Of a DNA stretch of 64,000 nt, positions 1 to 25,782 are shown one piece after another. The position numbers and the translations under genes are program-made. The stretch spans positions 77,438,001-77,502,000 of the forward strand of contig NC_134468.1 of assembly GCF_964194025.1 (NCBI RefSeq), written 5' to 3'. This DNA comes from Convolutriloba macropyga. Taxonomy: Eukaryota. How positions within the stretch are numbered: the stretch's first letter is position 1; each line of letters begins with the position of its first letter. The notes below the pieces were generated by a model. It was not told where the DNA came from. It did not search any database and worked only from the letters and a program-made list of their open reading frames with translations.

Positions 1-2
1 AA

Positions 3-134
3 TGGGCTGATGCTTTTGAGGCCATTGACGATCTCGGAAGGGACATTAAGAAAAAGATGGTTCGACAGCAAAAAAAATCTGAAACGGCCAAAACGCAAAC
101 AGAGTTGTTGCAAGATACATCGTCCACTGAATGA
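3..134 (+). CDS. 3' end of an ORF entering from upstream (WADAFEAIDDLGRDIKKKMVRQQKK...TSSTE*), possibly the last helix of a BEN-like domain
   Basis: Open frame from the window edge to TGA at 132-134. The W..AF.AID..GR pattern followed by a basic tail resembles the BEN-domain C-terminal helix. Only 43 codons are visible. Confidence 0.35.
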   Translation, partial: WADAFEAIDDLGRDIKKKMVRQQKKSETAKTQTELLQDTSSTE

Positions 135-270
135 GCTTGATGATTTGAGCTGGGAATTTAAAACGTCTGTTTGTGATAATTATGTGACTGTTATTGCCTT
201 TATATTGCCTAATGAGGTCTCAGTTATGTTTCTTTCTCAAGCTAATTTGATGCTCTGTTCTTTAATTATT

Positions 271-435
271 AATTGCTCTCAAACGGAGTTTCTAGCGACT
301 ATATTAATGCTGCTGGTCTTACCTTGTGCGATTTTTTGCTAGACCGTTTCTTTTGTCTGACACCCCCTGGCAACCGCCAGTCCCCCCTCCATATAGTAAC
401 CGCCTTGCGGAGCCGTTAGTCGTTTGAGAGCAATT
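271..435 (+). mobile_element. Non-autonomous Helentron-type (HINE/DINE-1-like) element, short copy lacking the 3' hairpin
   Basis: Perfect 15-bp inverted repeats AATTGCTCTCAAACG (271) and CGTTTGAGAGCAATT (421-435). Internal sequence matches copies at 39443, 40172 and 47222. Confidence 0.6.
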
Positions 436-772
436 CTTTTATGTTCCTGTTCCTGTGCATATATTTGATTGCCAATCTACGTATGCAAATTTATAAAATA
501 TTGCTTTGTTTATCTCATCTTACACCTATTTTGTTTTGTGTGAAAAGAAAGTGAAATCTGTTTGTCCGAATTCATTTTTCACACTTGAAGTTATCCAGTT
601 GTTTTAACTAAAAACAAAGCTTGCTTTCAAACTTGTTTTTCTTTCAACCGGCGTGTTGAGTTTTAAGCACTGCTTTTTAAAGTCATGCGAGTTTTTTTCC
701 ACAAAAGATAGGAAATCTGGCGAGTTTCTGATAACAGCTTGTTTGGGGTTTCAATCCAAACTTTTTCTCCAG

Positions 773-1405
773 ATGAGAATGTGTAATAAATTATCTTGGA
801 AAGATTTAGCGCGAATTGATGCCAAACTTACAGCAGAAATTTTTGATGGTGAATTGATAAGAACTCACAAAGTTCCAATCGAAGATGACACTGATCATTC
901 AAGTGGGTTAGAGAAACAGTGGGAAAATAAAATGCGAGCCGATTATTTATCTTTCAGCGAGTTCTTTGAGCTGAGACCCCTTACTGATTCTTTTTCTAAA
1001 GACAGTCAATATTCAAGCTTAGGCGTTTTCTCTTATATCAACCTGAAGAAAAACAAAATTTTGAAGGGCCTAACTGGCTTTCTTGCACCAATGCCTCAGT
1101 CATCTATTGTTCCCGGTTTAAACGACGTTTCCATTATACAGCATGCATCTGGTCCTAAGCTTATGTTAGGCGGAGCTTCCTTCATTAACTCCAGTTGCAA
1201 GGAAAACTGCATCTACGTGCCAAATAAAAGCAAGACAATGATACAGATTCGAGCGACTGCTGTGCTAGGTGTTCAGAAGGGAGAAGAAATAACTGTCAAT
1301 TATGGCGGAGAGTATTTCGGACCAAACCGTATGTTCTGCGAGTGTCCCCACGCATCCCTACACGGTCACCAACCAGTCACAAATTTGTGGACGAGATCGG
1401 GTTGA
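773..1405 (+). pseudogene. SUV4-20/KMT5B-C/Set9-like SET domain, N-terminal part of a fused SET-transposase reading frame
   Basis: ATG at 773 follows a polypyrimidine-CAG acceptor. LSWKDLARIDAKLTAEIFDG..IRTHKV resembles the SUV4-20 N-terminal helical segment (KELCENDDLATSLVLDP..FQTHKM). MLGGASFINSSCKENC resembles WLGPAAFINHDCRPNC. GEEITVNYGGEYFGPNRMFCEC resembles GEEI.CYYGDGFFGENNEFCEC. Confidence 0.85.
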
Positions 1406-3872
1406 GTGAAGCCCGTTGTTGCAATTCCCACCTCCTCATGGTTAATTGACGAAACAGCGTCTTCTCTCGTTGTGTTTCCATCACTTTCGAGCACGCCTTA
1501 TTCTCAATCGAAACGTCAATTCAAACAAAGGTCAAATTGTAGTTATAATTCAAGAAGCATTCGAAAGCGCCGTTACCTTAGCAAAAAGGCTAAAACTTTG
1601 ATATCAGATTCGGAGTCGGAAAAAAGCGAATCAAGCAGTTGCAACGGTTTTATTGAGCAACCCTCTCTTAGTCAGGTACCAGAGAATACAGATTTGTTTC
1701 AGCAAGTTTCAGAAAGTTCGGTGTTAGCGAATCCTTTTCCGGTAGAGTCATCAACCCCGCGTGCACTGGGTAGAGTAGATAACATGATCGACTCTTCCAG
1801 TTTGAGCGAATCCGAAACTCAGACCGACGAAACTCTTAGTGACTCTGATAACCTCATTTGTGATAATTCGAAAATGTCTGTGTCAGAATTTACCGATACT
1901 TTTTTAAGCCTGTCTGATGAAATTGCCATTAGTGACCGCTTTGCCAAGTCTCTGATTTCACTGATGGATAAGTGTTTGCCAATGAAAAAAATTTGCCGAC
2001 ATTTTATCGTCTTCAACAAATTGAGAACACGTCTTTCACTTGTGAGGAAGAAAAAGTTCCCGGTGGCGTAATCTGCCATTTGAACGTTGAGTCTCAGCTG
2101 GTTGGTTTGGTTGAGCGGAATTTAGATTTACTGAGGGCTCCAAACTGGCAGCTAAACAATGATGTGAGATTAGAGACAAAGAGCGATTGCGAAGTGCTTC
2201 ACTTTGTAATGAGCACTGACGGCGTCTCGCCGGCGAAATCGAAGAGGTTTAGCCTTTATCCTGTCTAGTTGATGCTGCTCAATTTGCCGCGGAAGCTACG
2301 TGTCTCTTACAGGAACTTAATTCTTGTTTCACTATTCGGAGGTGATAAAAAGCCTGATTGTACTTCTTTGGTCAAGAATTTGGTCGGATTTGTGAATTCA
2401 TTCAACAAACGGCGTCTGCTTACTGTTGGCAAAAATACATACAACGTTTTAGTAAACATCCGTTTGGTGGCAGTTGATGCGATCATGAAAGCGCCACTCT
2501 TAAATCAAACTCAGTTCAATGGTTTGTACGGATGCAGTAATTGCTATATACCCGGTGCCAGTCACCCTTCTGGTAAACCTTGACTGTATAGGTATGAGCC
2601 GACGCCATCAGATATTCGAACTCATACTGAACGTCAGAATGACCTATCCTTCAAACCTTCGCAAAACGCCCCAAGATTTGGATTGAAGGGTATCTCGTGT
2701 ATCGAGCAGTTAGTGTCAATTCCTGAGGATGTTGTCATTGACTACATGCATCAGGTTCTCCTCGGTGTTGTGAAGCGATCATTATACAGCATTGTGTGCC
2801 AAAAAGGATTTAACAAAATACTCAAAGAAATAGCGTCTGAGCGTCTTCTGAATTGCAAGCTTCCTAGCAATGATTACAATCGACATTTAAGGGGCGTTGA
2901 TTCGGTGAAGTTGTGGAAAGCCTCAGAGCTGAAACTTTTTCTACTGTATGGCATTATTTCTTTCTATGGTCTCCCTTCTGATCAAATGTTTACGCATTTC
3001 TTTTTATTGAGCGCTTCTATTCGATTATTGTTAGATCCTGATACTGAAAAAGACATTGATGTTGCCGCTAAGTCTCTAGCTACCTTCCGCAAGCAACTAG
3101 TGAGGTTCTACGGTGACAAGTCCGAAACATATAACGCTCATTCCTTGAGTCACTTGGCTGACCAAGTTAAGCGGTGTGGTCCTCTTTCAACAAGTTCCAG
3201 CATTGCTTTCGAAGCTGCTCACTTTCAGTTGAAAAGACGAATCAGTGAAACTACTTCCACATCTGTTTTCACGCGATTAGCGATCAAACGACACAATAGG
3301 CTTGCTGGTCGAAAGCGCGACTTCCGTACAAATGTAATGGCAATTGGCTCTGTTGTTTTGAGGAACAGTCATGAAGTTGCAGTTAACGTTGGGGACGAGC
3401 TTGCTGTCTTCCGAAGCTCTTCCGCTTTTTCTTTTCTTGAGTAAATTTTTATTGTCACAATTCGAAATGTCGTTACCTCGAGAATGGTTCCTGCGTGCAC
3501 ATTGTTAAGTTTGAGCGCGAGGATAAATGCGTTTCTTTTGGACAACTCTTGGCTATATATGTTGACATCGAAAATTGCTGCGGCGTTGCACATGTAAAAT
3601 TTTTTGAGGAATTCAAGTCGTTTCGTGAACTACTCAGCGAACGTTTTCAACAGCTCGAGGCTTCAAGCATCGACAGTATAGATATGGATTCTGATTTAGA
3701 TGAGAGCTTGGAGCTACTAAACTCTACGGCAGAAAGGCATTTTGTTGTAGAATCTTTAACCAGCGAAATTTTTGAAATAGATATAACAAAACTACTAGTT
3801 CCGTGTATTGTTCGATCCATTGGGGACCTTGTTGTAATTTCCGAGATTTGCTCTGTGTTTGAAAGAGATTGA
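1406..3872 (+). pseudogene. Ser/acidic linker plus CACTA/EnSpm-type transposase, disrupted
   Basis: Motifs STDGVSP..SKRFSLYPV(*)LMLLNLP, DAIMKAPLLNQTQFNGLYGCSNC, DYMHQVLLGVVK, WKASELKLFLLYG and YNAHSLSHLADQVKRCGPL...SIAFE. Lesions: frameshift ~1980, TAG 2266, TGA 2581, stop/frameshift ~3442. Confidence 0.85.
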
Positions 3873-4014
3873 AGTTTTCTTATATGTTCTTGCACTGTTT
3901 ACGCTATTGTTTTGTCATTAATGTTTGTTTTCAATTTCTTTTTTATGAGGTGGAGCACATCATAAAAAGCTGAAAAAGTTTAAGCGAGTTATTCGTTTTT
4001 TAGATTGTTTGTAA

Positions 4015-4587
4015 ATGCCTCGAAATTACGTGAGGAAAGTGAAGCGCAAGTATTCTGAGAAGGACATGGAGGTTGCTCTGTCGTTAGTCAGAGATGGTTA
4101 TCCTGTTGCTGATGTTGCAAAGCATATCGGCATACCCAGACAAACGTTGTACGACAACTTAAAAAAGAAGCGTGACAGGTCACGGATGCATATCCTCGAC
4201 GAGCAGACGGAGAAAGACCTATGCAAATTTTTTTCTAAAATGCAGGAGGTAGAAATTGTAAATTCTTGGAAGGTGGCACGGGAGAAGTTGATGCAACTCA
4301 TTTATGTCATAAAGGGAAGAAATAGCGTGCCCAAAAATTGGAAGAAAAACGGCAAAGCATCGAAAGATTGGCTTTCTGGTTTCCGTAAACGGAAGAATGT
4401 GCTGCTTTCGGACAAAAAGCCGAACTGGCTTCCCGATCAAATAATTGCACCTGTCGGTGAGTGTGCTTGTGGGAGGAATCCACTCTCCATCGACTTCTCC
4501 TTGTGTCTACATTGCTCGATCTGGAACTGCAGTATTTGTTTCGGAGAAGACTTGGCTTGCTCCCAGTTTATATCTAAAATTTCGTAA
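4015..4587 (+). CDS. Intact 190-aa pipsqueak-HTH + CENP-B/Tc5-type HTH DNA-binding protein with a C-terminal Cys-rich (Zn-finger-like) tail; no DDE domain
   Basis: MPRNYVRK..RKYSEKDMEVALSLVRDG..VA..AK..GIPRQTLYD is the psq-HTH pattern. EKDL....NW..NGKASKDWLSGFRKR is the CENP-B/Tc5 HTH pattern. Tail CAC...CLHC..WNCSIC...C. A splice acceptor (TTTTTTAG, ~4003) precedes the ATG and AATAAA lies at ~4610. Confidence 0.8.
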   Translation: MPRNYVRKVKRKYSEKDMEVALSLVRDGYPVADVAKHIGIPRQTLYDNLKKKRDRSRMHILDEQTEKDLCKFFSKMQEVEIVNSWKVAREKLMQLIYVIKGRNSVPKNWKKNGKASKDWLSGFRKRKNVLLSDKKPNWLPDQIIAPVGECACGRNPLSIDFSLCLHCSIWNCSICFGEDLACSQFISKIS

Positions 4588-4746
4588 GCCGCAGTTTAAT
4601 CTTTCAGTCAATAAATAGGTAAATGTGTTTTTTGTTTTTGAGCAAGACGAGTCGGCCAGGCACATAGCAGCGCGTGTTTAGATACCTTCTGTTGTGAGAA
4701 ATGAAATTTGACGCCTCTTCGTACGCAATTTTATATTTGAAAATTT

Positions 4747-6722
4747 CAGATTTGGAATAACTTGTCTCAAAAATGAATTTGTGAAGGCCATAATTTTTGC
4801 TTCAGTTTTGTGTGTGTGTGTTTTGTTTGTGCCGTATGTGTTTTGCTTCAATTTCGGGTGATCAAACACTGCGCTTGTCGAATATCAAAAGCAGTTTTGT
4901 CTGTTTTGCGGAGAAAAAAACATTTCTTATCTGTCTCCAAGAAAAAAACTTGGCGACCGTTCTTGATTTCACTCAGAACAATGTTCTTTTTTAACTCAGA
5001 CACTGAGTAGAGTATAGCTAAGGATCCTCTGTTGTGATAGATGAATTAAGGCAGCTTTTTTTACGTGCGCGTTTTTTTATTGGAGAAAATTCCGTTCAAC
5101 TTGTGTTGGTGGGGTGATTTCGTACAAGCGTTCTGGTGCTCTTCCGAGGAAACCTAGTGTCATTCTAACGTGCTCGGCAATAAGTTATGCAGTTGTGTGT
5201 TAGTTGTGCTAGTTTTTCCTACAATTTAGCGTCTGCTAATGCTTTATGACAGTATTGAACGTTTAATTAAGTCCAGAAAAAAAATGAAATTTTTAATGAA
5301 AAAAGTTTTCGATACTTCTTACTTTGGTTTTTCGGGTAGTGAGATGTTAAGTGCGACGAAGTTGGTTGGTTAGGTGACCCGGTGACAAAACCAGTTTCCC
5401 TGAATAATTTTTCTTGTTCTTTTGGTTAGGAATATCGTAACAATTTGAGATAAAAAAACACGGCGGGCCATGGGGTACATCTGCTCAAAATCCAAATTTC
5501 AATGTTTGCATGTTTGCAAACATTGGAATTTGGATTTTGAGGAGATGTACCCTAACGCCCGCCTTTTTTTGACACCTACAAACAAAGGGCTATCTGGATC
5601 GTTATTTTGCGCTAATAAAAACTTTTGCCCAGATTTGGAATAACTTGTCTAAAAAGTGAATTTATGTGAAGGTCATAATTTTTGCCTCAATTTTGTGTGT
5701 GTCTGTTTTGTTTGTGCCGTATGTGTTTTGCTCCAATTTCGGGTGATCAAATACTGCGCTCGTCGAATATCAAAAGCAGTTTTCTCTGTTTTGCGGAGAA
5801 AAAAAAAGTTTCTTATCTGTCTCCAAGAAAAAAACTTGGCGACCGTTTTTGATTTCACTCAGAACAATGTTCTTTTTTAACTCAGACACTGAGTAGAGTA
5901 TAGCTAAGGATCCTCTGTTGTGACAGATGAATTAAGACAGCTTTTTTTACGTGCGCGTTTTATTATTGGAGAAAATTCCGTTCAACTTGTGTTGGTGGGG
6001 TGATTTCGTACAAGCGTTCTGGTGCTCTTCCGAGGAAACCTAGTGTCATTCTAACGTGCTCGGCAATAAGTTATGCAGTTGTGTGTTAGTTGTGCTAGTT
6101 TTCCCTACAATTTAGCGTCTGCTAATGCTTTATGGCAGTATTGAACGTTTAATTAAATCCAGAAAAAAATGAAATTTTTGATGAAAAAAGTTTTCGATAC
6201 TTCTTACTTTGGTTTTTCGGGTCGTAAGATGTTAAGTGCGACGAAGTCGGTTGGTTAGGTGACCCGGTGACCAAAACAGTTTGCCTGAATAATTTTCATT
6301 GTGCTTTTGGTTAGGAATATCGTAACTGTTTGAGATAAAAAAACACGGCGGGCCATGGGGTACATCTGCTCAAAATCCAAATTTCAATGTTTGCATGTTT
6401 GTACCCTAATGCCCGACTTTTTTTGACACCTACAAACAAAGGGCTATCTAGATCGTTATTTTGCGCTAATAAAAATTTTTGCCCAGATTTGGAATAACTT
6501 GTCTAAAAAGTGAATTTATGTGAAGGTCATAATTTTTGCCTCAATTTTGTGTGTGTCTGTTTTGTTTGTGCCGTATGTGTTTTGCTCCAATTTCGGGTGA
6601 TCAAATACTGCGATCGTCAAATATCAAAAGTAGTTTTGTCTGTTTTGCGGAGAAAAAAAACGTTTCTTATCTTTCTCCAAGAAAAAAACTTGGCGAGCGT
6701 TCTTGATTTCACTCAGAACAAT
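4747..6722. repeat. Tandem repeat, ~855-885-bp unit, ~2.3 copies, inside the CACTA right arm
   Basis: CAGATTTGGAATAACTTGTCT recurs at ~4747, ~5630 and ~6484, with high identity between units. Confidence 0.95.
5453..5570. repeat. ~115-bp near-perfect palindrome/hairpin
   Basis: GGGTACATCTGCTCAAAATCCAAATTTCAATGTTTGCA pairs with TGCAAACATTGGAATTTGGATTTTGAGGAGATGTACCC, with outer GGCGGGC/GCCCGCC and A/T runs. Confidence 0.9.
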
Positions 6723-7181
6723 CATAATTTTACCGGTTTTCCCGGTAAGACCAGCAGCTCATTCCCGGAAATACTTGCGGGAATTTTAAATTTCCCAGTT
6801 TCCCCGGTAAAATCCCGGCCGGTAAATCCCGGAAATACTGGCGGGAATCTTAAATTTCCCGATTTTCCCGGTAAGATCCCGGCGGAGAAATCCCGGAAAA
6901 ATTGGCGGGAATCTTAAAGTTCCCGAGTTTCCCGGTAAGATCCCACTGGTGATTCCCGGAAATCCCGCCGAGATTTAATTTTTTCCCGGTTTTCCTGTCA
7001 GGGTTCTTAAACGTCCCAGATTTCCCGGCGGGAAATGCGGGATCTTGCTCTATCTTGGCACATCTTGAAATTCCCGGTAATTTTCCCGGTAAGATCCCCG
7101 GATCCTCCCCGTGTTTTTCCCGGATCTTGTCGGGAAAAAAACCGGGATCTTAATAAGATTTCCGGGATCCGACGCACTGGG
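6723..7181. repeat. CACTA subterminal short repeats (TTCCCGGTAA/ATCCCGG/CGGGAAT in both orientations) and right terminus
   Basis: Numerous CCGG/CCCGG-centred motifs in ~450 bp, ending in CTGGG; typical En/Spm subterminal architecture. Confidence 0.8.
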
Positions 7182-8093
7182 TATGAGAGCATGGCATATA
7201 GAAGTTGTACCCAAGTTAAACACAGATAGTTGTTTCAATGCAATAATGAGATTTATTGCCCGAAGAGGCAAGCCAAGTACAAATGTCAGTGACAACGGGA
7301 CGAATTTCGTTGGTGCTGAAAAAGATTTTGCAAGAGTACGTTGCAGCATGGAACAAAGAAGGGATCGAAGAACGTCTAATTCAACGAGGAATCAGATGGA
7401 AGTACAATCCACCCGCAGCACCTCACATCGGAGGAGTATGGGAGCGATTGGTGGGAAGTTGCAAGAAAGCAGTGTATGCAGTGTTGGGGAACAGATCAGT
7501 CACCGAGGACGTGCTTTCAAAATAGATGTGTATTGCATAGCAGATGTTGAACGCAAGACCGTTGACTCCTGTCAGTTCAGACGTTAACGACGTAGAAGAA
7601 TTGACCCCACAATCATATCTTGCTTGGCAACAAGAACGTTTGCTTGCCCTACCTACCATGTGCGGAAAAATTTGTTGTTCATCGAAAGCTCTTTCGACAA
7701 ACTCAAGCTTTTGCAAGTCTCATATGGGACAGATTTCGTAAAGAATATCTGCCAACTCTGAATTATCCGCAAAAATGGCGATCTACAGCAAATGAAACAC
7801 TTAAAGAAGGCGATCTCGTTTGGTTGATCAAAAACAGCAATAAGCCTGGATATTACAACCTAGGTCGAGTTACGGAGACCATTGACGGGTTTGACGGTGT
7901 GATTAGATCGGCGATAGTTCGAACGAACAACAGAATGTACAAGAGACCAGTAGTGAAGCTCGCCCCAGTACTACCTGGAAAAGATGTTTTCGCGATAGAA
8001 AACAGGGCCGACAATTTTGCGGCTGAGGATAATAAATCAGAAATCAAATTGGAAAGCGCTTCAAGGCCATTTCAAGCATTAAAACTAAAATAG
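7182..8093 (+). pseudogene. BEL/Pao LTR retrotransposon integrase core + DUF5641-type C-terminus, frameshifted
   Basis: MRAWHIEVV..L.TDSCFNAIMRFIARRGKPS...SDNGTNFVGA; IRWKYNPPAAPHIGGVWERLV; LNARPLT; IWDRFRKEYLPTL...KW; GDLVW....GRV......DGVIRSA.VRT....YKRPVVKLAP. Confidence 0.92.
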
Positions 8094-9904: not shown

Positions 9905-10350
9905 TCCACGTTTTTTTGTGAATTGGAATGCTATAATATTTTGGGATCAAATCTGCAAATATTGTTGTTCTCGATCTAGAAAATGTCACACGAATATCAA
10001 TTTGATTCATTATCAAAGAACACAGTTTGTGTTGCAGTTACTACGATACAATACAATTTAAACATCCAATCAGCTTTGCAGAATTACCGGCACTTGATCG
10101 ACAAATTGTTTCTTGGCTTAGACAGAACCTGCACGGCCTTGATTGGGACGAAGATACATTTACCGATTTACCTGGAAAAAGTTTTTTTCAAAAAACACCA
10201 AAAATTGTGAGCTCATCGGCAAGCTGCTACGAGAAATTTTAATTTGTCCCTTATTTGGGAGATTTTTCCGGAGGAAACAGTTGCTTCCTGCAATCGTCAT
10301 CCGAATTGTTTAACAGCAGACGGTCATGTTTAATCTCATTGTGCAGAACA
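9905..10350 (+). pseudogene. Maverick accessory ORF, DEDD exonuclease-like remnant
   Basis: ANIVVLDLE followed by FKHP..F.EL...DRQIVSWLRQNLHGLDW; broken frames. Confidence 0.45.
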
Positions 10351-11110
10351 TAAAGCAAAAATATTTTCACAATTCAAAAGAAGTGATGCACAGAGAAAAG
10401 ACGGCAACACTGACCACCTATCTGTCATACAGCTTGAAGACATTTACTTGTTTGACTCCTCTTGACGATCAACCGATACTCATATTGAACAGAGCTCAAG
10501 ATCCTATTATTCCAATACAGAACTATTATTCAGTTGATCAACAGAAGCACGAAAATTTTTCAACAACAGATTGGGTGTAGCGCCTCAATTCCTGAACACC
10601 CGCTGTAAACACAGCTGCCAAACGTTACCTTGCAACAAAAACATCTCCAGCTTACTTTGAAAGAAATGCCAGATGACTTGCAATTGTATGTCCTGGAACA
10701 CCCCGAAATTCAAAAAGTCTTCAAACAAACATAGTATAAAGAATTTGACTCATCAACTGTTTGTTTTAAACTAGATAAAAGAAGTCATTTTAAAGGTTTC
10801 AATATGTTTGAATTCTGGTACATGAAACAGTTACCCGTTAATAACAATGAGTAACTTTCTTATTCATTTTTTTGTATCATTCTTGCTCTTTACTTTTTAC
10901 GTTTTAAGCATACAGTTTTCATAAATGCATCAAAGAGACAAAACTGATGCGGATATCAGCAATTTAGTGCTTGATGTACACAACAAGGAGAGATGTACTT
11001 AACAATGATGTACACAACTGAAGTAATATTTTCTGTTCAAGTAAGTATCCTAGTTTTGATTATCATTCTGTGCTTCACTATGTTATTTTTTATCAGAGAA
11101 TTTTAAAAAA

Positions 11111-11330
11111 ATGGACTTGGATTGCATTGTTGACCAGCTTAATTGGTTATATTTTGCTGAACCCAAAACGAAGAACAAAGTGATTCTGACACTTGACAGG
11201 ATATTCATGTCAGTTGTTTGACCAAGAGGTTTCGGCAAAACTGAGCTAAGTTTACGTATGCTACCGGGAAAAATTTTTTACCCACGTTTCCAGAAAATTT
11301 ACTCTTTCTAAATAGAATTCTAGCCGCTCT
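11111..11330 (+). pseudogene. Maverick packaging ATPase (FtsK/HerA-A32 type), N-terminal remnant
   Basis: DRIFMSVV(*)PRGFGKTEL..RML...FYPRFQKI is a Walker A with the first Gly mutated to TGA; the rest appears deleted. Confidence 0.7.
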
Positions 11331-11474
11331 TCTTGCGCAGAAATCGAAAACTTCGTGCGCAAGTTTTTAGACAGAAAAATTGATAAAATTCAAAGAACAA
11401 AATTATTCCAATCACCTAGTGGCTTTATTTTCATTCAAATATTTAACAGCCCTACGCAAATTAATTGGAGAAAA

Positions 11475-12150
11475 ATGAACACTGAAGAGTTTGTACTGAT
11501 TCTTCGTCAAATGTATGCAAAAGAGCAACCGCAAATTTTTCAGCTGCTTTCTAACGAAGACGATGTAGAAAAAGCAAAACAGATTTCACTTTCACAGAGT
11601 ATCAGTTTTCCATTACCACCTTTTGTTGCTCAGCAAGATTTGGTGATGTGGAACAACAAAACAGATATGGAAGTGAACGAAAAAAAAACAAGCGAGGAGA
11701 AAACTGATGCAATTGAAAAAATCAAAGTCAGCGAGCGAATCCTAGGAGAAAGTAAATATTTAAAAGGATCAAAAGGATTTAAAAGGCTATCCACATATTA
11801 GATGAGATACAAAAAATTGAGCTTTTCTCTTTTGACACAAAGAGAAGATTTATAATTGATGAATCAGGCACAGAAATTTTTGCTGTCGACTTTCTCTACT
11901 ATCTACATTAGCCAACCTAGAAACTAACACGCAGTCTTTTCAGAGTACTTGCTGTACTAGACATCAGCAGTCATCTTACTATCATCACGTCTGCAAAACA
12001 GTTTCTTTTACTGTCGCCCGGGGAGATATTTACCGTATTGGAAGATGACGTATCAGAATAAGAGGACGCAACTACAGGAATCCAGGGAGATCAATAACCA
12101 AAAACTGCTGGCAACGATGAGAGCAGCGTTAAGGAAGAAGAATTGAACCC
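11475..12150 (+). pseudogene. Maverick uncharacterised ORF upstream of the integrase
   Basis: MNTEEFVLILRQMYAKEQPQ...; co-oriented between ATPase and integrase, with broken frames downstream. Confidence 0.4.
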
Positions 12151-13100
12151 CTGGTTTGTGGAAAAGTTACTACCCTAGATAAACTACACAAAAGGTAGTG
12201 CATTATTTGGAAGCATAGCAAATTTAAAAAAACAAGCGGTCTGTCTCGAAAAAGAATTTTGCACTACCTCCAATCGAAAAGCCCTGACACAAAACACAAA
12301 CTGTTCAGAAAAAGTTTACCGAGACTCAAAGTTGTTTCAGACAGAATAAACGAAATCTGGTCTGATGATTTTTGTACATGGATAGAGTGCAAGGTTTTCA
12401 AACTTTATAACCTTGCAAGGTATTCAAATTATAACAAGGTGTTCAAATTTTTTGCTGGTTGCTATTTGATGTTGTATCACTCTACTCGCACGTTCAACCA
12501 ATGAAAAGAATGTATGCAGCCAATTGCGTTGAAGCGTTCAAAACGATAATAAAATCTGAACAACCAGAAAAAGCTTGGACTGTCAAAGTGCTCAAAGGAG
12601 CCTTAAAAAAATTTGCGATAAAAAGCATTCATTTATTTACAAATTGAAAGCAAAACCGAGTCAGCCTTTGCTGTAAGGAATATTAGATCGCTCAAAAACC
12701 TAAATTACAAAATCTTGGGGAAAACTGGACGTGGACTTATTTTGATGATTTGCAGAAATTTGTAAATACAACAAACAGCCGTGTAAACCATGTTACCAAA
12801 TTAGCGCCTAATAAAATTTTCAAAACACTTGAGCCAATTTTATTTTTGTTAGCCCTGATCAACACAAAGTCTTACAAAGCCAATTTTGAGGAAGGTGACT
12901 TATTACGTATTGCGAAACCAGTCGAAATTTTCAGTAATGGTTACACACAAAACTATAACAAAGAAGTGTTTAAAGTGTTCAGAACTGCCACAATGAGTCC
13001 ACCAATTTAAAATTTTTTGGATGCATACAGCGAAAAAATTGACGGAAAGTTTTACGAACCCAAGCAAGTCAAAGTAAATGTGTTGGTAACTAAAGACTGA
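12150..13100 (+). pseudogene. Maverick retroviral-type (rve) integrase
   Basis: YTKG.A.FGSI.NL...SGLSR; RLKV....INEIWSDD; QPEK.W; SAFA.RNIRSLK; TNSRVN.VTKLAPN; F.EGDL.RIAKP...F..GY.QNY.KEVF; IDGKFYEP. Confidence 0.85.
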
Positions 13101-13109
13101 AGAAGAAAA

Positions 13110-13909
13110 ATGATTACTGGAACAGAATTTAGAGTAGACTTAATATCCACCGCATCAATTGTTACTTTTGCTGAAAACACAATAGCAAAATTAAGTAACC
13201 AGTTTGCTTAACCATTTATGTTGGAAGGAGAATGGCAAGTAGCGTTAGCTTCAATATCCTTCCCATCAAACATCAACAACTTAAATTGAAACTGGATAGT
13301 CGTTTATGTACATTCAGACTCCGAAGTTGATGCCTCACATCAGCGTAGCGGACACCTTAGAAACATTTGCAAAGGCATTTACAATAGCTTGGATCAGCTC
13401 ATAAAGGATATTGTGCCTATAGCTCCTTTGAAGCAACTTCATTTTAATGTTGACAAAATTACTCATAAACTTGTTTTACAGTGTGGGACGAATGAATTCT
13501 TATCATTTGAAAAAGAAGAAGTTCCCAGTATTCTCGTGATGGTTACATCCTGTTTGGATACTAATCAAACAAAGTTCTCAATGGACACCAAAGCGATTTC
13601 CAAGTTGACATTATTTGTGGCTCCCAAATAAATTTTTTTCACATAGGCATCATAGAATATCAGATTATTGGTGATATGAGAGCCCCAGTTGTTAAAATTA
13701 TTAAAAGCGAAAGTCGTTTGAGAATTGGCATCAAAAACATTGTTACAACCATCCATCACAAGACATTTACAATTCTGGATTACAAGCCCATTTCTTTTAA
13801 AACTATTCAAAATATTAAAGTGGTGCTGAGAAACGAGGCCGGAAAACTCGTTCCAATAACGGATACAGGTAGAGTAGTAGTGAGCTTGAAAGTTCAAACA
13901 ACCGAGTGA
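13110..13909 (+). pseudogene. Maverick minor capsid (penton-like) protein
   Basis: EFRVDLISTAS..TFAENTIAK..NQ...PF.LEGEWQVALASISFPSNI...; IIEYQIIGDMRAPVVKII; YKPI...TIQNIKV.LRNEAGKLVP..DTGRVVVSL. Confidence 0.75.
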
Positions 13910-13910
13910 A

Positions 13911-14345
13911 ATGGGAGCTTACTACAGTAACCAAGCATCTCAATCAATTCCACTTTTTTTCGGTCATTATTGTCAACAAGGAAGTGGTTTTGGAGCCCTC
14001 GCCACAGGTATTGGAAGAGTTCTTGTACCATTGGCAAGAAAATTTTTATGGCTCGCCGCGAATTGACTCGGTCGAAAACGTTTAGTGCAGGGCGCATCTG
14101 AGTTAGTAGAAGTAGCAACGAATAAAACGTCGGTCAAGCAATTGTTGAAAAGCAGAGTAGCGAAAACAGCGCACAAACAAAATGGTGGTTTGCTGCAATC
14201 ACACATAAGAAGAGGTCGGCAAACTATTAGACGTCGGAGATAACAGTTTGCTAAACCTCGAAGCTAAAAAAACGTTTTCTTTGAAAAATCAGTTCTCAAA
14301 AACCACAGCCAAGAAGGAGTTGGCTGAATTTTTTTCTTGAGAGTG
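13911..14345 (+). pseudogene. Maverick small basic/core-type protein between penton and hexon
   Basis: HFFGHY.QQGSGFGALATGIGRV motif followed by a basic region; typical position before the major capsid gene. Confidence 0.55.
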
Positions 14346-14349
14346 AAAA

Positions 14350-15590
14350 ACGGCGAACTAATATTGTACTACGCTCAGAAGCCAATCACAGCTTCTTGCA
14401 TTTAATTGAAAAACCACCTTTGCTAGTTACCTTTGATCAATCATTCGAGCAAAAAACTGGACCACTTTATTTTCCCCCTAGATCAACGCTCGAATTTGAA
14501 GTTGGAGGCAATCCCAACATAGATTTGCAAAAAATTTATTTGGAAGTAAAATGTCAAAAACGAAGAGCTGATAGAACTGATTTGCGATATACCGCCAGTG
14601 ATGCAACCGCAACCGATGCCGCATGTTTTTTCAACAATGTTTACATTCATTGTTCGCCGACTGCACTGTTTTTGCAAATGAAATAAAAAAGTCCTCGGCT
14701 AATGGACTCTCCGCTCATAAAAATTTCATTGAAACAAAACTTTCACATAGATCTGATGCAAAAAAAACCTGATTAAAATGTCATGGTTACAAGTATGATC
14801 CCCGCTGGTATTTTGTGCAGCCTTATGAGATGCAAGGAAGGTAGCTGTGAGATTATCTAAACAAATTAATTTATATGGAAAGCTCGCTTTTGGTTTCTTT
14901 TCTTGTAAAAAACATCTAGAAAGTGATGTTAACCTGTAACTTTTTTTCCGGAGTTCGCAAGAAGATTTTGTTACCATTACTGAGACAGCGGCAAAAAATT
15001 GCAAAATTAAAAATGGTGAAGCCAACTTATTTGTTGGACAGATGACAGCGCCAGACAATGTTGTTGGACCCATCGAAAGACCACTCCTGAAAACTCCGGC
15101 AATGTATTGCCACAAACATTCCTCGCAACAGAAGGCCAAAGCATTTGGAAACATAAAAATAATTTCACAAAGGAACGAAAAAGGAGACTGATTGTTACAT
15201 ATTCTAGCAATGCATTCATTGGAACTAACAATAGAAATCCCTACCACTACCTAAAGTTCGATTTGCGTGAAATAACGGTGTCTCAAAACGGGTTTGCTAC
15301 AACGTGAACAACAATTTTAACAAATAATAACAAACGCCTGTATTATAATTCAATGAGTGCCTCAGCTTATGTTGAAAACGGTCATGGAATACCCCTAAAT
15401 GGTTTTGCGCATCACTTTATAATGGTGTTTGACTTAAATAATACACTTTTAATCATCCCGAACTAACAAACTCACCATTATCGGTTGAACTAAAAATTGA
15501 TACTGATTTGCCAAACAACATTGAATTTTTCTGCTGGGAGAAAAATCATCTACTGCTTCTACTGTTTACATTGACACTGCAAAAAATGGA
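14350..15590 (+). pseudogene. Maverick major capsid (double jelly-roll hexon-like) protein
   Basis: KPPLLVTFDQSFEQKTGPLY....TLEFEV.G....IDLQKIYLEVKC; SANGL.AHK.FIET; AFIGTN.RNPYHY.KFDLREITV..NG; HHF.MVFDL; PELTNS..SVEL. Confidence 0.8.
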
Positions 15591-15937
15591 TGAAGAACAA
15601 AGTTATATTCAAATTCAAAATTGCAAAAATCTGAAATTTAGATTCCGAGGTGTTTATGCAGCTGACAATTATCCCTAATACTTACCAGTTAACAATTTTA
15701 TAACTGTGAATATGTCGCGAGCTGAATCTCTGGTTCACATTGGGTGATGCTTGCAAAACGCTACGCATACCCAGTGTATACTTTGCAGATTCGTTAGCAC
15801 TACCTATGACTGCCTATAAAGACGTTTTCTCCCGCTTACAGCATTATACTGATTTACGTATGATGATGGATGTTATGGAGCACACCAGAGATATACAGTC
15901 TCACCTGCAATCAGCAGACTCGCAACTGTGTGGTATA
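15586..15937 (+). pseudogene. Maverick adenain-type cysteine protease
   Basis: KFRFRGVYAADNYP...FITVN.S.....SHWVML....YFADSL.LP and Q...SQLCG (catalytic His, Asp, Gln and Cys positions); truncated just after CG. Confidence 0.8.
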
Positions 15938-18900
15938 ACCCAAAAATCGCTCAAAATTCGAAAAATTTCGATCTCAAATCCTAGTTATTTTGATATATCT
16001 CAAGAAATACTCGTCCAAACCTGGATTAACCTATTGTTCTGAAAAGCGCTTATCCATTAAAAGCGATTCCAGCTAAAATTGACCCCTCTCGACCCGTTCT
16101 ACGTACCAAAAACTTAGCTCAAAGTTGACCCTTCCAAAAATTCTATGTTCACCTCAGAAAAACAGTCACAAAATTGTGAAAAAAGCACTGATCATTCCAA
16201 ATTTTTGCGCTGCAGCATTTTTCAAGCCGACGAACCGACATGCAAATTCTAAAGCGATTTGGAGAACTTTAAAAATCGAGTGACGCTGGAGCCCTCAATT
16301 TTTGACACTTTTCGAATCCACTCAAATTCAATGATAACTCCCACAAAAACCCCCAATTGACCCATTTTATAGACCTAGACCATCCTACTGCTCCCACTTG
16401 ACATCTCAGTACCCAAAAATCCCGTCAAAAATTAATAAAAGTTGAGTTATGACAAAAATATCGAACCCTACCAAAGTGCGTTAAAATTGACTAAAATGTA
16501 GTGTAAATTATATCCAAAAAATATGCCAAAAACTGTCCCAAATGCCTCCAGCAGCTACTCCCAGCTGCCAACTACATGGTACAAACTCAAACAACCATAA
16601 AAATCCCATATTTTTAACTATATGTTGAAAAATGATGAGAAAACGGAAATTGCGCTTCTGCTTCAATCCTCTGCTTCAAAAATTTTGTCATTTTATTCTC
16701 CACCTGACCCGATTAAAGCAACCTATACCCCCTAAAACCCTAGTGCACCCCCCCCCCCCCCCACTAGCCTTGTAGTACCATAAAAACTAGTCCTAGCTCA
16801 TCCCAGTATCAACCATGAAGACTTAAACCCAAATAAGCTCTGAAATTGCCACAATTTTGTCAGAAAAAATTCAGTTATTTCCCACTAGAGTCAAAATTAT
16901 TAACTTCTGACAGCTATTAACCATACCATCAGCACCTTCGCATATATATCTCTCAGAATATGCACTCCCAGCCCCTAGTGTCAATATAAGCTGAGAAAAG
17001 ACTGCCAAAATAACGAAAATCACAAAAATTTAAGTGTAATTTCCAGCAAAAGTGATCCAGAATGCATCTTAATACCTGAATATGCCCGATTGTTATTTCA
17101 GTTAGCCCTACTCATGAACAGTCCAACCATAGCAATATCAATCATTCTGAACAAGTTTTTCATAGCCTCATAGCCAATAACCTATCTCCTATCTGAGCCT
17201 TTTCAAAAAACCCAGGTTCACTGCAGCGAAAACGTTATAAATCGTGAAAAGATAGCTGAAACCGCCAAACGCGCTGCAGGGTTTTTTGAGCCGATAAAGC
17301 GATTCATTAATTTTGAGCTGGATCGAAGCATTTTAAAAATTGAGTGACGCTGGGCCCCTCAATTTTGGAGACTTTTTGAAAATTTACGAACGAGTTCATA
17401 AAATCCGAAAAATTGATCAAAAACCCAATATTATTAGCTTAAAACATCCGCATGCTCAAGGTCTGCACGCCCATACTAAAAAAATTGAAACTTGTTAAAC
17501 AAAATGTTGGAATAATAGAAAAAAAACGAAGCCTACCAGACTCTTCTCAAATTCGCCAAAATAGAGCCAGATTTAGACCATAAAAATAGTATCAAATAGC
17601 CAAATTATGAGCCCATATCCAATATTCAGTCTCCCTAGTAGTTGTCTAAACCTAATAAACCCATACAATTGCATAGAAATTCATAAATGTTGAAGAAAGT
17701 AAAAAAAATCGAAAATTGCACATATCTGATCAAATTTAGCCCAAAATTCTAAAGTGAAAAACTCCACATAACAAAGTCAAATCATGCACCAAACTGCACC
17801 AACAGCTGCTACCAACATAGTACTCACTATTATGATCCACAATCACTGTCAAAAATCAATTATCGACAATCTATGTCAACTTATGCACAAAACATGACGC
17901 TTCACAAATACAAACCTCGTAAATTTCACAGAAAAACCGGCACAAAACACAAGTTATTCAGCTTCAGAGCTACCAAAATGCTACCCCTGGTATATCAGTA
18001 CTAACAGTTAGCACCTGATTTAGGCCACTAGAGAATTACCAGACCGACACATGTCTCGCAGAAGCTCAATTAGTGGAAAAATCACGCCTAAAAATTAGCA
18101 TTTTGGACGTAAAAATCAATGTTCTGACCCGATAAATAGCTTCAAACCCTATAATTCAGTAATATACATTAGTACCAAGCACAGACAGTACCATTTTTAC
18201 CATTCAATACCGATAATGTATGGACAGTGACGACTTATTCAGACCGAAATTTCATGATCCAAAAATAGCCAGGTTAAGATCACAAAAACAGTCATAACTT
18301 TGCGAAAAATGCTCAAATTGCGCCAAATTTTTGCTTTGCGCTGCAGCGTTTTTTGAGACCCTGAAGCAACTTACCAATTTTGAGACCGATTGGAGCAATT
18401 TAAAAATTGAGTGACGCTGGAGCCCTCAATTTTTCGCATTTTTCGGTTTTTCATACATTATTAAAAAAGTTGAACAAAAAGTGCCCAAAAACCTGAATTT
18501 ATAGCATAGTTATTCCCCATCGATGTCTACTGAGTGGGCTAAGCCAAAAAATTTGCCCAAAATTTAATAAAAATCGAAAAATTCACATATATGCAATACC
18601 AGCCCTGATGAGGAAAAATGGCCAAAATTACGAAAAAATTACATGTAAAAACTAGTACCAAATACTCTTCTAAACCAGTTCAAATTACACACAAGCGCTG
18701 CTAACAACCGGGAAAAGTATCTAGAACCATTAGAACCAGTCTATAATCAATAATTCACAAGTAAATTAAAGTTAATGCCCGAAAATAAAAAAAGGCGTTA
18801 TTTCACCAAAATTTCACCTTCACAAATATGTCATTATAAAGTCACACACCGACATTAAAATGTTACCACATGCTCACACACACTACAGCTTCTATTTCCA

Positions 18901-22651: not shown

Positions 22652-23146
22652 TCAGTGCTTTATACACTCGAAATAACTGTTCACTTCCAGAAATTAACCA
22701 GTGCTTTAAACTAGTCATTCAACCAGAATCCTTCTCCTACTCCTTCTCAAAGTTTAGAGCCATTATTTAACGAAATAACCGTAATTATTTTCAGTGCTAA
22801 CTCAATGTCTTCTCTTAATGTTAACTTTAAACTTATGTCTTCACTCTTTACTCTGAGATTAGCGCACTTTCACATTCTAAATGTTCCTTCAAAGCTCTTA
22901 ATCTTGTCTTAACTTTCCTCACTTTAACCTTTATCCCATTTGTCTTAACTTAAACTTTATTTCTCTTAACTTCTTTAATTGTCTTAAACTTAGATGCTTT
23001 CGTTCCAAAACTCTTTTCTAAGAAAACATAAATTGGGTGGCTCCAACAAAAATATGTTTATATCCTCATACTCGTGCAGATTATATGTTTTATAGAAAAA
23101 TTGTAAAACCCAGTTCTTTCCCAAAATTTTCATGGAAAATTTTTAT

Positions 23147-23200
23147 AAAGTCCGGTAGTGTCACGCCCCTATTTCGTCCCTCATAGTTACGTGATGATAT
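23147..23200 (+). mobile_element. Putative PPT-like tract and start of a 3' LTR (TGTCACG at 23159) of the env-bearing element
   Basis: TAAAGTCCGGTAG|TGTCACG follows a long pyrimidine-rich 3' UTR; LTR end not identified. Confidence 0.4.
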
Positions 23201-23429
23201 TCCTTAAAATATCCAGAATTAAGTGCTTTATATTAATTAATATTGATTCAGTTTCAAGGCCAAATATAGCCAGTATTTCCATCTAGGCCTGTAACCTCTA
23301 ATTTTTTTATGTTTACGAAAAACAACCGCAGAGTGACAGTTTAATAGCAAACATATCAAGTGCCTAAAAGCCTCAATATTTACTTTTTTGAGTTTCTTGA
23401 TGATAAATTCACAAAATCAGTAAATAACT

Positions 23430-23612
23430 TTGTGAAAGATTATGTACTTGGTGAAGTAATTATTCTGATAAAGTAGGTGCTAAAACGGAATTTGTATATG
23501 TACTTAACAAACATCAAGAGACGTACAAAAGCCGGAAATTGCCCAACTTGTAGATCAGTAAATATTTGCGAAGGACCAATACAACTCAAGGTACAGCCCT
23601 GCGGAACCCACG
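23430..23612 (-). pseudogene. Highly degraded non-LTR reverse transcriptase scrap
   Basis: Minus strand reads VPQG....IGP...IFTD, resembling the GVPQGS.LGP.LF..Y.ND motif. Confidence 0.3.
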
Positions 23613-24549
23613 ATCACCAGAACACCAGAGAACCAGCCTGACAATCAGTTGCCCAACATCTTATAAAACTTGATAAAAACTTGAGAAACTTCTTGCTAAA
23701 GTTATTGAACAACTATTGCTAAATATAATTAAAGATTGAACTGGAAAATCTTTATAAAACGTTAAGTTACAACAGGCTTCAATAAAGCTAGATAACTCTG
23801 AGAAAAGTTATTAAATACAAGGCAAACTAGTGGATATATCACGCATCTGAACCGCTCAATAAAAGGCTATTACTAGCTAAATCTATTCAAAATATATCTG
23901 CTAAAAATCGCACTGTGAAACATCAAAATAAGTCCTTGTAAAATGACAGTTATTATAACTATTTGCTTCGAATATTTACCTCAATAACATCGTAGATTCA
24001 TACTCTAAAAATCAGTGCGTAACAGCTTTCTTTGTGCTATATGTAACGCTTCGAGAGTTTTTGTGGCACATAGCACTCATCATTTATACGCGAATGAAAC
24101 GCGAGTGATGTGCCACAACATTCGCTTACATGCTGACCTACCGATGATTCCTTTTTTTGATGCTCTGCCATCCGTGTGGTTATATGTCCGCAAGTTTGCG
24201 CGACATAGGTAGAATTGCATCTACTACTTGTTATTTCGCATACAATATGCGATTTTAGATGCTGGTCAAAACTAGACTATAATGATGGTAAACAGGTTTT
24301 TAGTTTCCATGTTGTGTAGATGCGTTATTTTTTGCAGCTTTTCCTTAAGTTAAACATTACATATAACCAAAGAGACAGGGGGTATAACGGGAAAGAGCCT
24401 TTAAAATCCGTTCTAAGTGGCGGTATCAGAATAAATCCAAATATCAAGTAATTACAACACAATTCAGAGCTCTAACAGTTAATTAGCCTCCCGATTCGTG
24501 CCAATGATTGTTTAAATTTGTTGTTCTAGAGAGTTAATGAAAATTTGAG

Positions 24550-25782
24550 ATGTCTATGATTGAATATCTGCAAAAAAATTATCTAGATGCGCAACCAAAA
24601 GAAAAAAAGAAAAAGCGGAAACGACAAAAAGAAGAGAACAATATAAAAATTATTGACTATAGTGAGGGTGACTGGCAAAATACTGAATTCAAATCAGAGG
24701 ACGAAGATATTGAACTGGACGAACTCCCGGCTGTTGCAGAGACAACAGATGAGCGACCAGCAGAATTAGTTGAAATAGAGAAATATCGTGCCAGTTCTAG
24801 TTGGAAAGTGTTAGAAGCCTCCGATGGAAACCGGAAAACAGATGATTCTCGGAAACATGACTCGATTTTTACTCTAGACGGAAAATACAATAGAAAGACT
24901 CAACTGGCGAGGAAACGACATGACTCTAGCAATGCTTCGCCATACCGGAAACGTAATGGTTCCAGTGATGCTTCACCACCCCGAAAACGACATGATCCTA
25001 GTGATGCTTCGCCACCCCGAAAACGACATGATTCAAGCGATGCTTCGCCACCCCGAAAACGACATGATTCAAGCGACGCTTCGCCACCCCCAAAAAGACA
25101 TGATTCAAGCGACGCTTCGCCACCCCGAAAACGACATGATTCAAGCGATGCTTCGCCACCCCGAAAACGACATGATTCAAGCGATGCTTCGGCACCCCGA
25201 AAACGACATGATTCAAGCGACGCTTCGCCACCCCGAAAACGACATGATTCAAGCGATGCTTCGCCACCTCGAAAAAACATGAACCAAGTAGCTGAAGATG
25301 AAAATGTGAATTCGGAGCAGAGAACTATTTACCGGGACCGAGCAACAGGTAAGAAAAAAGAAGTAAATAGAGATTTGGAGGCCAAGCAGAAAATGATACA
25401 AGATAAAGTAGCCAAGTGGAAAACAGGGGCCGCCCAAATAAAGCAGCAGAAATCTGCAGCACAAGACGCCATTCATGAAATGGGAAAAGATTTCACGAGA
25501 TCGACGGGCGACGTTGACCTAGAGAAATATCTAAAGGAGAAAACTCACGAAGATGATCCAATGGCGGATTACTTATGCAAGAAAAAGGCCAAGAGAGAGA
25601 AGAATGCTGTTTATCCGAAGTACAAAGGCTCCTGGCCAGCAAATCGTTTTAACATACCGCCAGGGTACAGATGGGATGGAGTTGATCGATCTAACGGTTT
25701 TGAGAAGAAATACTTTGACAGCATTAACAACAAGAAAGCATTTGCGGAAGCTGCTCACAAGTGGTCAGTGGAAGACATGTAG
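24550..25782 (+). CDS. BUD13: BUD13 homolog (RES splicing complex subunit), uninterrupted coding region
   Basis: N-terminal YL.K.YL...KKKKRKR; central RHDS.DASPPRK repeats; TIYRD..TG; DDPMA.Y; PKYKG.WP.NRFNIPPGYRWDGVDRSNGFE...A.KWSVEDM C-terminus. Confidence 0.96.
   Translation: MSMIEYLQKNYLDAQPKEKKKKRKRQKEENNIKIIDYSEGDWQNTEFKSEDEDIELDELPAVAETTDERPAELVEIEKYRASSSWKVLEASDGNRKTDDSRKHDSIFTLDGKYNRKTQLARKRHDSSNASPYRKRNGSSDASPPRKRHDPSDASPPRKRHDSSDASPPRKRHDSSDASPPPKRHDSSDASPPRKRHDSSDASPPRKRHDSSDASAPRKRHDSSDASPPRKRHDSSDASPPRKNMNQVAEDENVNSEQRTIYRDRATGKKKEVNRDLEAKQKMIQDKVAKWKTGAAQIKQQKSAAQDAIHEMGKDFTRSTGDVDLEKYLKEKTHEDDPMADYLCKKKAKREKNAVYPKYKGSWPANRFNIPPGYRWDGVDRSNGFEKKYFDSINNKKAFAEAAHKWSVEDM
24916..25275 (+). 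repeat. 36-bp coding minisatellite, 10 units (RHDSSDASPPRK)
   Basis: Consecutive units of CGACATGATTCAAGCGAYGCTTCGCCACCCCGAAAA. Confidence 0.97.

Follow-up and report, generated by a model that had tools for sequence, protein, structure and literature searches.

The window analysed here is a stretch of 64,000 nt from Convolutriloba macropyga (assembly GCF_964194025.1, NC_134468.1:77,438,001-77,502,000, forward strand), and all positions are counted within it unless another locus is named. The layout of its first part was established by reading positions 1-5400 together with a listing of open reading frames (ORFs). Positions 773-3872 hold a single broken reading frame, which encodes a SUV4-20/KMT5-like SET domain, a linker rich in serine and acidic residues (Ser/acidic linker) and a DDE transposase of the CMC (CACTA-Mirage-Chapaev) superfamily. 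The window copy, a transposase gene from a large DNA transposon of the cut-and-paste type, decayed recently and is dead, and its value is as evidence for its family. Together with its relatives, it gives good reason to regard the SET-transposase fusion as real, native to a clade of transposons, old and kept by selection, and an enzymatic role for the SET domain is somewhat more likely than not. The parts of the frame are listed below, where L001 is a paralog and the read contigs are Logan contigs of sequencing runs X1, X2 and X6, all from this organism.

773-1402, plus strand: predicted SUV4-20/KMT5-like methyltransferase domain; intact ORF of 210 codons with ATG at 773; Pfam SET E = 1.2e-7
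1403-1405, plus strand: in-frame TGA, in the context ACG AGA TCG GGT TGA GTG AAG
1406-1983, plus strand: Ser/acidic linker with basic patches, in the frame of the SET domain; the linker ORF extends over 1406-2068
1984-1989, plus strand: frameshift by a one-base deletion in an A-run; extra base in L001 and the read contigs
1990-2265, plus strand: N-terminal part of the transposase, aligned with 14 intact relatives; first catalytic Asp candidate in STDGVS, 2212-2229
2266-2268, plus strand: TAG replacing Trp; TGG in L001 and the contigs, Trp in relatives
2269-2580, plus strand: transposase core; second Asp candidate in VDAIMKAP, 2473-2496; CxxC motif GCSNC, 2530-2544
2581-2583, plus strand: TGA replacing Trp; TGG in L001 and the contigs
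2584-3441, plus strand: transposase core, continued; DYMHQ, 2740-2754; H-x4-H, 3136-3156; GPL..FE with the catalytic Glu candidate, 3178-3222
3441-3444, plus strand: frameshift and stop; extra A and T>A in L001 and the contigs
3445-3872, plus strand: C-terminal domain of the transposase; conserved end ..FE(H/R)(D/S/N), here VFERD at 3855-3869; stop codon at 3870-3872

The first-pass annotation, made from the letters alone, had placed the SET ORF and the linker in one frame with a single TGA between them and had explained the remaining breaks as simple lesions. Reading of the sequence and the ORF listing confirmed the shared frame. The other breaks were found where they had been placed, and all five sites were undamaged in L001.

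Other copies, spread of the fusion and selection

When the longest transposase piece was used as query, relatives were found only in unannotated assemblies, with several copies in the window's own assembly. The paralog L001 is 97.46% identical over 4.6 kb. Base-by-base comparison showed that L001 has AC in place of TT at 1402-1403, which gives GGA CGA (Gly-Arg) and not TGA. It also has an extra base at 1989, A>G at 2267 and 2583 (each restoring TGG), and an extra A with T>A at 3441-3442, and is thus in the undamaged state at all five lesion sites. The prediction that codon 1403-1405 would be CGA in an open frame of other copies was borne out by L001, and the majority contigs agree with it. In the alignment, the TGA sits where the family has an Arg of a basic cluster, conserved across the family, that follows the post-SET region (CGA in L001 and the read contigs, Arg in the sister-family locus L004). 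L001 carries private lesions of its own, namely a one-base deletion at window position 1144 and a TAC>TAG change at 2529. The private lesions differ between the window copy and L001, indicating that both decayed independently from an open frame. Another copy, L002, has an internal deletion of 2.1 kb that corresponds to window 782-2865, and L003 is the window's own contig, which begins 1665 bp upstream of the window start.

The Logan contigs of X1, X2 and X6 carry the undamaged letters and have the private lesions of neither the window copy nor L001; no joint was found in them between 600 and 4700. The Bud13 gene and an intergenic stretch served as control. The control showed flat depth and zero differences in X1-X3, indicating that X1-X3 were sequenced from DNA of the assembled individual. 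Dividing the DNA word depth over the element by that of the single-copy control gives a family copy number of ~6-20. The majority sequence of these genomic copies agrees with the undamaged letters, and the window copy diverges from it by ~1-1.5%. Over the element, X1 and X2 have high and unequal depth, which might suggest RNA; the single-copy control ruled this out. In run X6, which bears the label 'DNA?', the coding part of Bud13 is 30-100x deeper than the adjacent intergenic DNA, indicating that X6 behaves as an RNA run.

The transposase of this clade is natively one protein of ~1000-1100 aa, composed of a SUV4-20/KMT5B/C-like module, a disordered Ser/acidic linker, a DDE core and a conserved C-terminal domain. 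L004 represents a sister family in the same genome (44-50% protein identity), with the part order BEN-like ORFs, SET, transposase and helix-turn-helix (HTH) ORF. Its SET, linker and N-terminal half of the transposase form one uninterrupted ORF of 645 aa, in which the junction reads ..WTRSGRVRV.., with Arg at the position of the window's TGA. Exhaustive HMMER search with the L004 ORF returned 1729 relatives, among them 12 proteins (908-1108 aa) with matches to both halves. Eight of the nine proteins tested with Pfam have an N-terminal SET together with DUF1258 and/or Transposase_21, several of them with scores above the curated cut-offs, and a second search yielded ~10 further intact proteins (1016-1108 aa) with PF00856 and PF06869. 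More than 20 intact fusions of 980-1108 aa were found in other assemblies, two intact fusion genes of 1006 aa are present in the window's own genome (L009/L011 and L010), and further members occur in at least three other assemblies and in Logan runs. The single SET-linker-transposase protein of ~1030 aa, which had been reconstructed by repairing the lesions, accordingly has intact both-domain counterparts of 980-1108 aa in this and other genomes. Open junctions exist, so that a stop or intron does not part the halves in all copies, and the SET is linked to the transposase in every family examined.

Selection was estimated by dN/dS from two intact paralogs (dS = 0.094), with a binomial test for excess of synonymous change. 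The SET gave dN/dS = 0.147 (7 nonsynonymous and 12 synonymous changes, p = 8e-5) and the transposase 0.170 (p = 9e-11). The purifying selection on the SET answers the dN/dS check proposed in the first-pass annotation. For the linker, dN/dS was 0.455 and the synonymous excess was not significant. Among 14 intact lineages, mean pairwise identity was 0.347 in the transposase core and 0.315 in the SET, and fell to 0.195 in the linker, the least conserved part of the protein. Across lineages with ~30% identity, the SET has thus been kept to much the same degree as the catalytic core.

Family and active site of the SET domain

The N-terminal helical segment and the post-SET region had been taken as matches to SUV4-20, and whole-length comparison upheld this. 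In a phmmer search of the Protein Data Bank (PDB), the window SET matched SUV420H2/H1 with E = 3e-11, versus 0.018 for NSD2. A SET profile (A2), built from 28 SET regions of the family, matched SUV420H2/H1 in the PDB at 1e-31 to 3e-29 (SUV420H2 1.3e-31), with KMT2C as the next family at 2e-12. The AlphaFold2 model of the window's 210 residues has a mean pLDDT of 88. When this model was used in Foldseek, ranks 1-16 were all SUV420H1/H2 (TM 0.67-0.79), and other SET families scored ~0.43. Ranks 1-15 reached TM 0.68-0.79 over ~217-246 columns, so the N-terminal helices are included, and the whole-length SUV420H1/H2 fold matches gave TM 0.77-0.79. Pfam thus identifies a SET domain, and both the profile and Foldseek place it in the SUV4-20 family.

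Active-site residues were mapped with the help of the published Suv4-20h2 structure (PMC3874154) and the residue numbers in the profile alignment; the counts come from ~100 members that are related and not independent. The motifs of the window SET, and the residues at the Suv4-20h2 positions across the family, are as follows.

791-829, plus strand: motif of the N-terminal helices, with THK at 860-874
1121-1132, plus strand: NDVS, with the Ser161 equivalent
1181-1198, plus strand: FINSSC in place of NHxC
1202-1216, plus strand: ENCIY, with Tyr at the Phe191 position
1295-1309, plus strand: VNYGG, with the Tyr217 equivalent
1337-1363, plus strand: post-SET CECPHASLH
Ser161 equivalent: S in 103/104 members
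Tyr217 equivalent: Y in 94/96 members
Asn182 equivalent: N in 95/100 members
Cys185 equivalent: C in 96/100 members
Asn188 equivalent: N in 98/100 members
His183 (NHDC motif) equivalent: S in 64, H in 21 and A in 9 of 100 members; NSSC in the window
Phe191 equivalent: Y in 81 and F in 14 of 101 members; Tyr in the window

From the aligned sequences, the SET fold and the family-specific catalytic residues are kept, and two pocket residues differ systematically from cellular SUV4-20. In Suv4-20h2 the active-site Ser161 hydrogen-bonds the substrate lysine and Tyr217 is catalytic; Phe191 forms a hydrophobic pocket for the substrate methyl group and is linked to me1-to-me2 specificity, and Tyr at this position is the canonical configuration of a mono-methylase (PMC3874154). 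Two post-SET Cys residues are nearly invariant in the family, and the subgroup of protein P0071 has the canonical post-SET CxCxxC.

Transposase class, element ends and flanking features

The transposase pieces of the window had no Pfam match at E <= 1, so classification had to come from relatives. The pieces align over their full length with relatives that pass Pfam cut-offs. P0079 scores 42 bits on Transposase_21 (PF02992; cut-off 28.6), and P0071, P0031 and P0079 score 38-45 bits on DUF1258 (PF06869; cut-off 33.1), with 45 for P0071. The transposase domains of the L001 ORF (E = 0.024) and the L004 ORF (E = 1.7e-4) lie below cut-off. In a protein search, the relatives of the transposase core included P0014, which bears PF02992. 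DUF1258 corresponds to Mirage and Transposase_21 to CACTA/EnSpm, and the two are close relatives (PMC3985635). The matches of relatives to both families indicate a transposase of the CMC superfamily. The window copy is in register with 14 intact relatives at STDGVS, VDAIMKAP, GCSNC, DYMHQ, AHSLSHL, GPL..FE and the C-terminal FE(H/R)(D/S/N). The D, D and E catalytic candidates (assigned by motif), the CxxC after the second D and the H-x4-H before the E are all present in it.

Element ends were mapped in a sister element (L009-L011). The similarity of the paralogs L009 and L010 stops at ..CCAACCCGGGA. L011 has a single upstream occurrence of this end in reverse complement, which differs at 1 of 19 bases and is 81% identical over 54 bp. 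The inverted repeat of this element is TCCCGGGTTGGRGTCCCA (54 bp at 81%), and the inverted terminal repeats bound an element of 20,110 bp. Its mapped terminus reads TCCCGGGTTGG, and CCATCGATGG palindromes are repeated subterminally inside both ends. CAC precedes the repeat at the 5′ end only and no target-site duplication of 2-3 bp was seen in the flanks, so that a strict CACTA terminus was not shown. The label 'CACTA transposase' given in the first-pass annotation thus holds in the superfamily sense (CMC), and the part of it that would call for a strict CACTA terminus and a 3-bp target-site duplication was not shown. The placement of the gene inside a transposon stood as regards a mobile element, and the window was found to hold only part of a much larger one. 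A search of the window for the terminus motif of the sister family, with up to 3 mismatches allowed, found no match, and the L001 contig, like that of the window copy, ends within the element.

The element carries accessory genes and long tandem arrays beside its SET-transposase gene. Those in the window, and the breaks in it, are as follows.

1-132, plus strand: C-terminal part of an accessory ORF that starts before the window; weak match to the BEN domain
4015-4587, plus strand: intact accessory ORF of 190 aa with an HTH_7/psq-like N-terminus and a Cys-rich C-terminus; Pfam HTH_7 E = 6.7e-8
4747-6722, plus strand: satellite of ~886 bp, ~2.2 units in the window
6738-6963: 64-bp tandem repeats after the satellite; the element then breaks off at a retrotransposon fragment
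7111-8093: C-terminal fragment of a BEL/Pao-type retrotransposon pol, directly after the truncated array; DUF5641 at 7620-8090, E = 1.4e-20

Two BEN-like ORFs lie upstream of the SET-transposase gene (window 1-132; L002 7381-9363; L003 1-1800), with weak Pfam matches, and a weak relative of them occurs in the L009/L010 family. The 425-aa ORF of L002 is 93% identical to window 3-131 (tblastn), and BEN PF10523 was matched on L002:8086-9360 with E = 0.0013. The 190-aa HTH ORF is intact in all three copies of the family, with 94-96% amino acid identity in L001 and L002, and is 33.5% identical in L004. It probably encodes an accessory protein of the element that binds DNA. An ORF of ~165 aa resembling GDSL/SGNH hydrolases lies upstream of the SET-transposase gene in families only ~30% identical (L002 4630-5124; L009 5503-6000; L010 4189-4686; L008 ~11800-11980, weaker; also in L011), and looks like a conserved accessory gene. 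The genes of 1305 and 800 aa called by a gene finder at L011 5585-12600 were rejected as translated short-period tandem repeats.

Long tandem arrays stand beside the genes in all families. The 886-bp arrays run to more than 10 units in L001 (5724-14959) and L002 (11776-21011). L004 has unrelated arrays on its two sides, with 393-bp units upstream (1-3051) and ~352-bp units downstream (10086-17260), and each downstream unit bears a 39-nt palindrome, CTCTTGGTTCTGGGAGTAATATCTCCCAGAGCCAAGAG. The flanking arrays of L004 may be arrays of binding sites. The BEL/Pao-type fragment probably marks a break in the element. The window also lacks 36-38 bp at 4598-4600 that are present in other copies and in the reads.

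Farther along the window, a gene for Bud13 (RES complex) occupies 24550-25782 and contains ~12 tandem copies of a RKRHDSSDASPP-like repeat. Two identical ORFs of 141 aa (25553-25978 and 28141-28566) are spaced by 2588 bp, which points to a recent ~2.6-kb tandem duplication. At 22900-24075 and 27425-27621 the DNA-run word depth rises to ~300,000, versus ~57 for single-copy sequence, with many internal joints, indicating very high-copy repeats. A NACHT-domain ORF and a leucine-rich-repeat ORF (32577-34571 and 41686-42834) are pieces of an NLR-like gene, as would suit the genome of an invertebrate animal. Together with the DUF5641 domain of the BEL/Pao fragment and the BEN domain, they point to an animal origin of the sequence.

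Possible role of the SET module and comparison with known systems

If the transposase is bound at the element ends, it would carry the SET module onto neighbouring nucleosomes. We lean, by a small measure, to the reading that this module has kept lysine methyltransferase activity, directed at H4K20 or a comparable substrate in donor or target chromatin. In favour of such activity, the residues known to act in catalysis and cofactor binding, and in nothing else, hardly vary across the family. The alignment has Tyr in place of Phe191 and Ser in place of His183, which suggests a product or substrate profile unlike that of the me1-to-me2 cellular SUV4-20. The pay-off for the element is speculative and could be repair of the excision break via readers of H4K20 methylation, selection of where the element inserts, or regulation of its own chromatin. 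A link through H4K20me2 to the recruitment of 53BP1 or ORC1 (PMC10697951, PMC3874154) is plausible but speculative. The fuller proposal, in which an active H4K20-type SET would be delivered to nucleosomes at the element's own ends or at break or insertion sites, and its mark would steer repair, replication licensing or silencing, is tentative and less likely than not.

Several observations weigh against an active and mobile SET-transposase of this kind. The NHDC cofactor motif is not kept, with His changed to Ser or Ala in ~75% of members including the window copy, nor is the Phe191 pocket, with Tyr in ~80%, and the F-to-Y change causes a dramatic loss of activity in Suv4-20h1 (PMC3874154). 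The post-SET region of the window's subgroup has a conserved CxCP(H/Y/F)x3-4H and not CxCxxC. SUV420H1 needs arginine anchors for the acidic patch on nucleosomes (R352/R357; PMC10697951), and equivalents of them were not identified in the family. X6, the only RNA-like run, covers the element at background depth only. The flanks of the sister element lack a visible target-site duplication, as described above, and the element of the window is truncated in what can be read of it, its 5′ end lying beyond the contig start (1665 bp upstream) and its 3′ side being cut by the retrotransposon fragment.

The first two of these points bear on a rival reading, in which the SET is a pseudo-enzyme that serves as a binding handle for the nucleosome or H4 tail and tethers the transposase for target choice or retention, with no methyl transfer. 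The His183 and Phe191 changes in most members, and the near abolition of Suv4-20h1 activity by F-to-Y (PMC3874154), are what this reading would lead one to expect, and non-catalytic nucleosome contacts are documented for SUV420H1 (PMC10697951; title of PDB entry 8t9f). However, residues involved only in catalysis and cofactor binding (the Tyr217, Ser161, Asn182 and Asn188 equivalents) are nearly invariant at ~30% overall identity, and the canonical NH(S/C)C motif is kept in ~20% of members. A pseudo-enzyme is therefore possible, and we give it a minor share of our belief.

The state of the window copy itself could also be read differently, as less damaged than apparent, if the two homopolymer single-base indels were errors of the long-read assembly. 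Both indels lie in or beside homopolymer A/T runs, and no read contig carries the window's version of any lesion. However, the read contigs show the majority variant only, and Logan contigs lose rare variants, so absence from them is uninformative. Moreover, three of the lesions are substitutions in a copy that is ~2.5% different from its paralog, and consensus errors are unlikely at 58x coverage. Assembly error is improbable on these grounds, and the copy is taken here as decayed.

It is very unlikely that the family is a host-domesticated SET-transposase fusion like SETMAR and not the working transposase of a mobile element. Intact copies under purifying selection would suit a host gene, and neither a transposition event nor a target-site duplication was demonstrated. 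On the other hand, each genome has several diverged families with multiple copies each, which decay independently, and the window's family alone has ~6-20 copies; the genes lie inside 20-kb units with terminal inverted and subterminal repeats, and the DDE and CxxC motifs are all kept. That the SET and the transposase are adjacent unrelated pseudogenes or a one-off capture with a coincidentally shared frame, as the stop between the halves and the missing Pfam matches of the window pieces might have hinted, is refuted by L001, L004 and the Pfam architecture of relatives, since the frame runs open through the junction in L001, L004, P0071 and over 20 further proteins, and gene order is kept in families only 30-50% identical.

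Transposons are usually viewed as targets of histone methylation, and a few are known to carry genes for chromatin modifiers as cargo. A complete KMT5-like domain within the transposase polypeptide, conserved like the core, implies that engagement with chromatin is built into the transposition machinery of this clade. If the SET is indeed active, these would be the first autonomous transposases known to contain a histone writer of their own, and they would occur in many lineages of animal transposons. The intact relatives are also natural variants of the SUV4-20 active site (H183S, F191Y and an alternative zinc motif), which could inform how product specificity is set.

No in-frame fusion of a KMT5-type SET with a CMC transposase was found in the literature searched; Repbase Reports lay outside its scope, and a prior description there is possible. 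An N-terminal SET was not among the features of the described CACTA/Mirage families that were found, and the Atlas search returned transposase clusters only (Transposase_21, DUF1258, Plavaka), with no large cluster that has a SET. The first-pass annotation had suggested that the combination might be undescribed. This stands for the in-frame fusion, which was found in none of the literature searched, and not for transposon-borne SET genes, which were already known. They are carried by HarbingerS, Phytophthora MuDR, some Helitrons and Plavaka, where PAG2 of the red alga Bostrychia is an example (PMC12730594; bioRxiv 10.1101/2025.02.11.637652). Plavaka is, moreover, a member of the EnSpm/CACTA superfamily with tandem arrays beside its accessory genes. 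In these systems, however, the SET is an incorporated or accessory gene, and Plavaka PAG2 also has a DNA methylase domain, whereas here the SET is the transposase's own N-terminus, of SUV4-20 type and in animal-type genomes.

With CACTA/EnSpm and Mirage, the elements share transposase homology, the D, D, CxxC, H-x4-H and E motifs, subterminal repeats and large size. They differ from CACTA/EnSpm in the terminus of the sister element, which is not a symmetric CACTA/CACTG, and in the lack of an observed 2-3 bp target-site duplication. With SUV4-20/KMT5B and KMT5C/Set9, the module shares the whole-domain fold, including the N-terminal helices and post-SET region, as well as the Ser161 and Tyr217 residues. 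The transposon version differs in being multi-copy and fused to a transposase, in having Ser at His183 and Tyr at Phe191 in most members, and in the variant CxCPx4H of the window's subgroup; neither a C-terminal module for targeting to heterochromatin nor arginine anchors were recognised in it. SETMAR (Metnase) likewise joins an N-terminal SET to a C-terminal DDE/DDD transposase in one polypeptide. However, SETMAR is a single-copy primate host gene, in which an Hsmar1 mariner copy was exonised downstream of a SET gene of another family, whereas the fusion described here has a SUV4-20-like SET and a CMC partner and lies inside a multi-copy, decaying transposon with many diverged mobile lineages. 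It thus provides a natural and testable counterpart to the domesticated SETMAR fusion.

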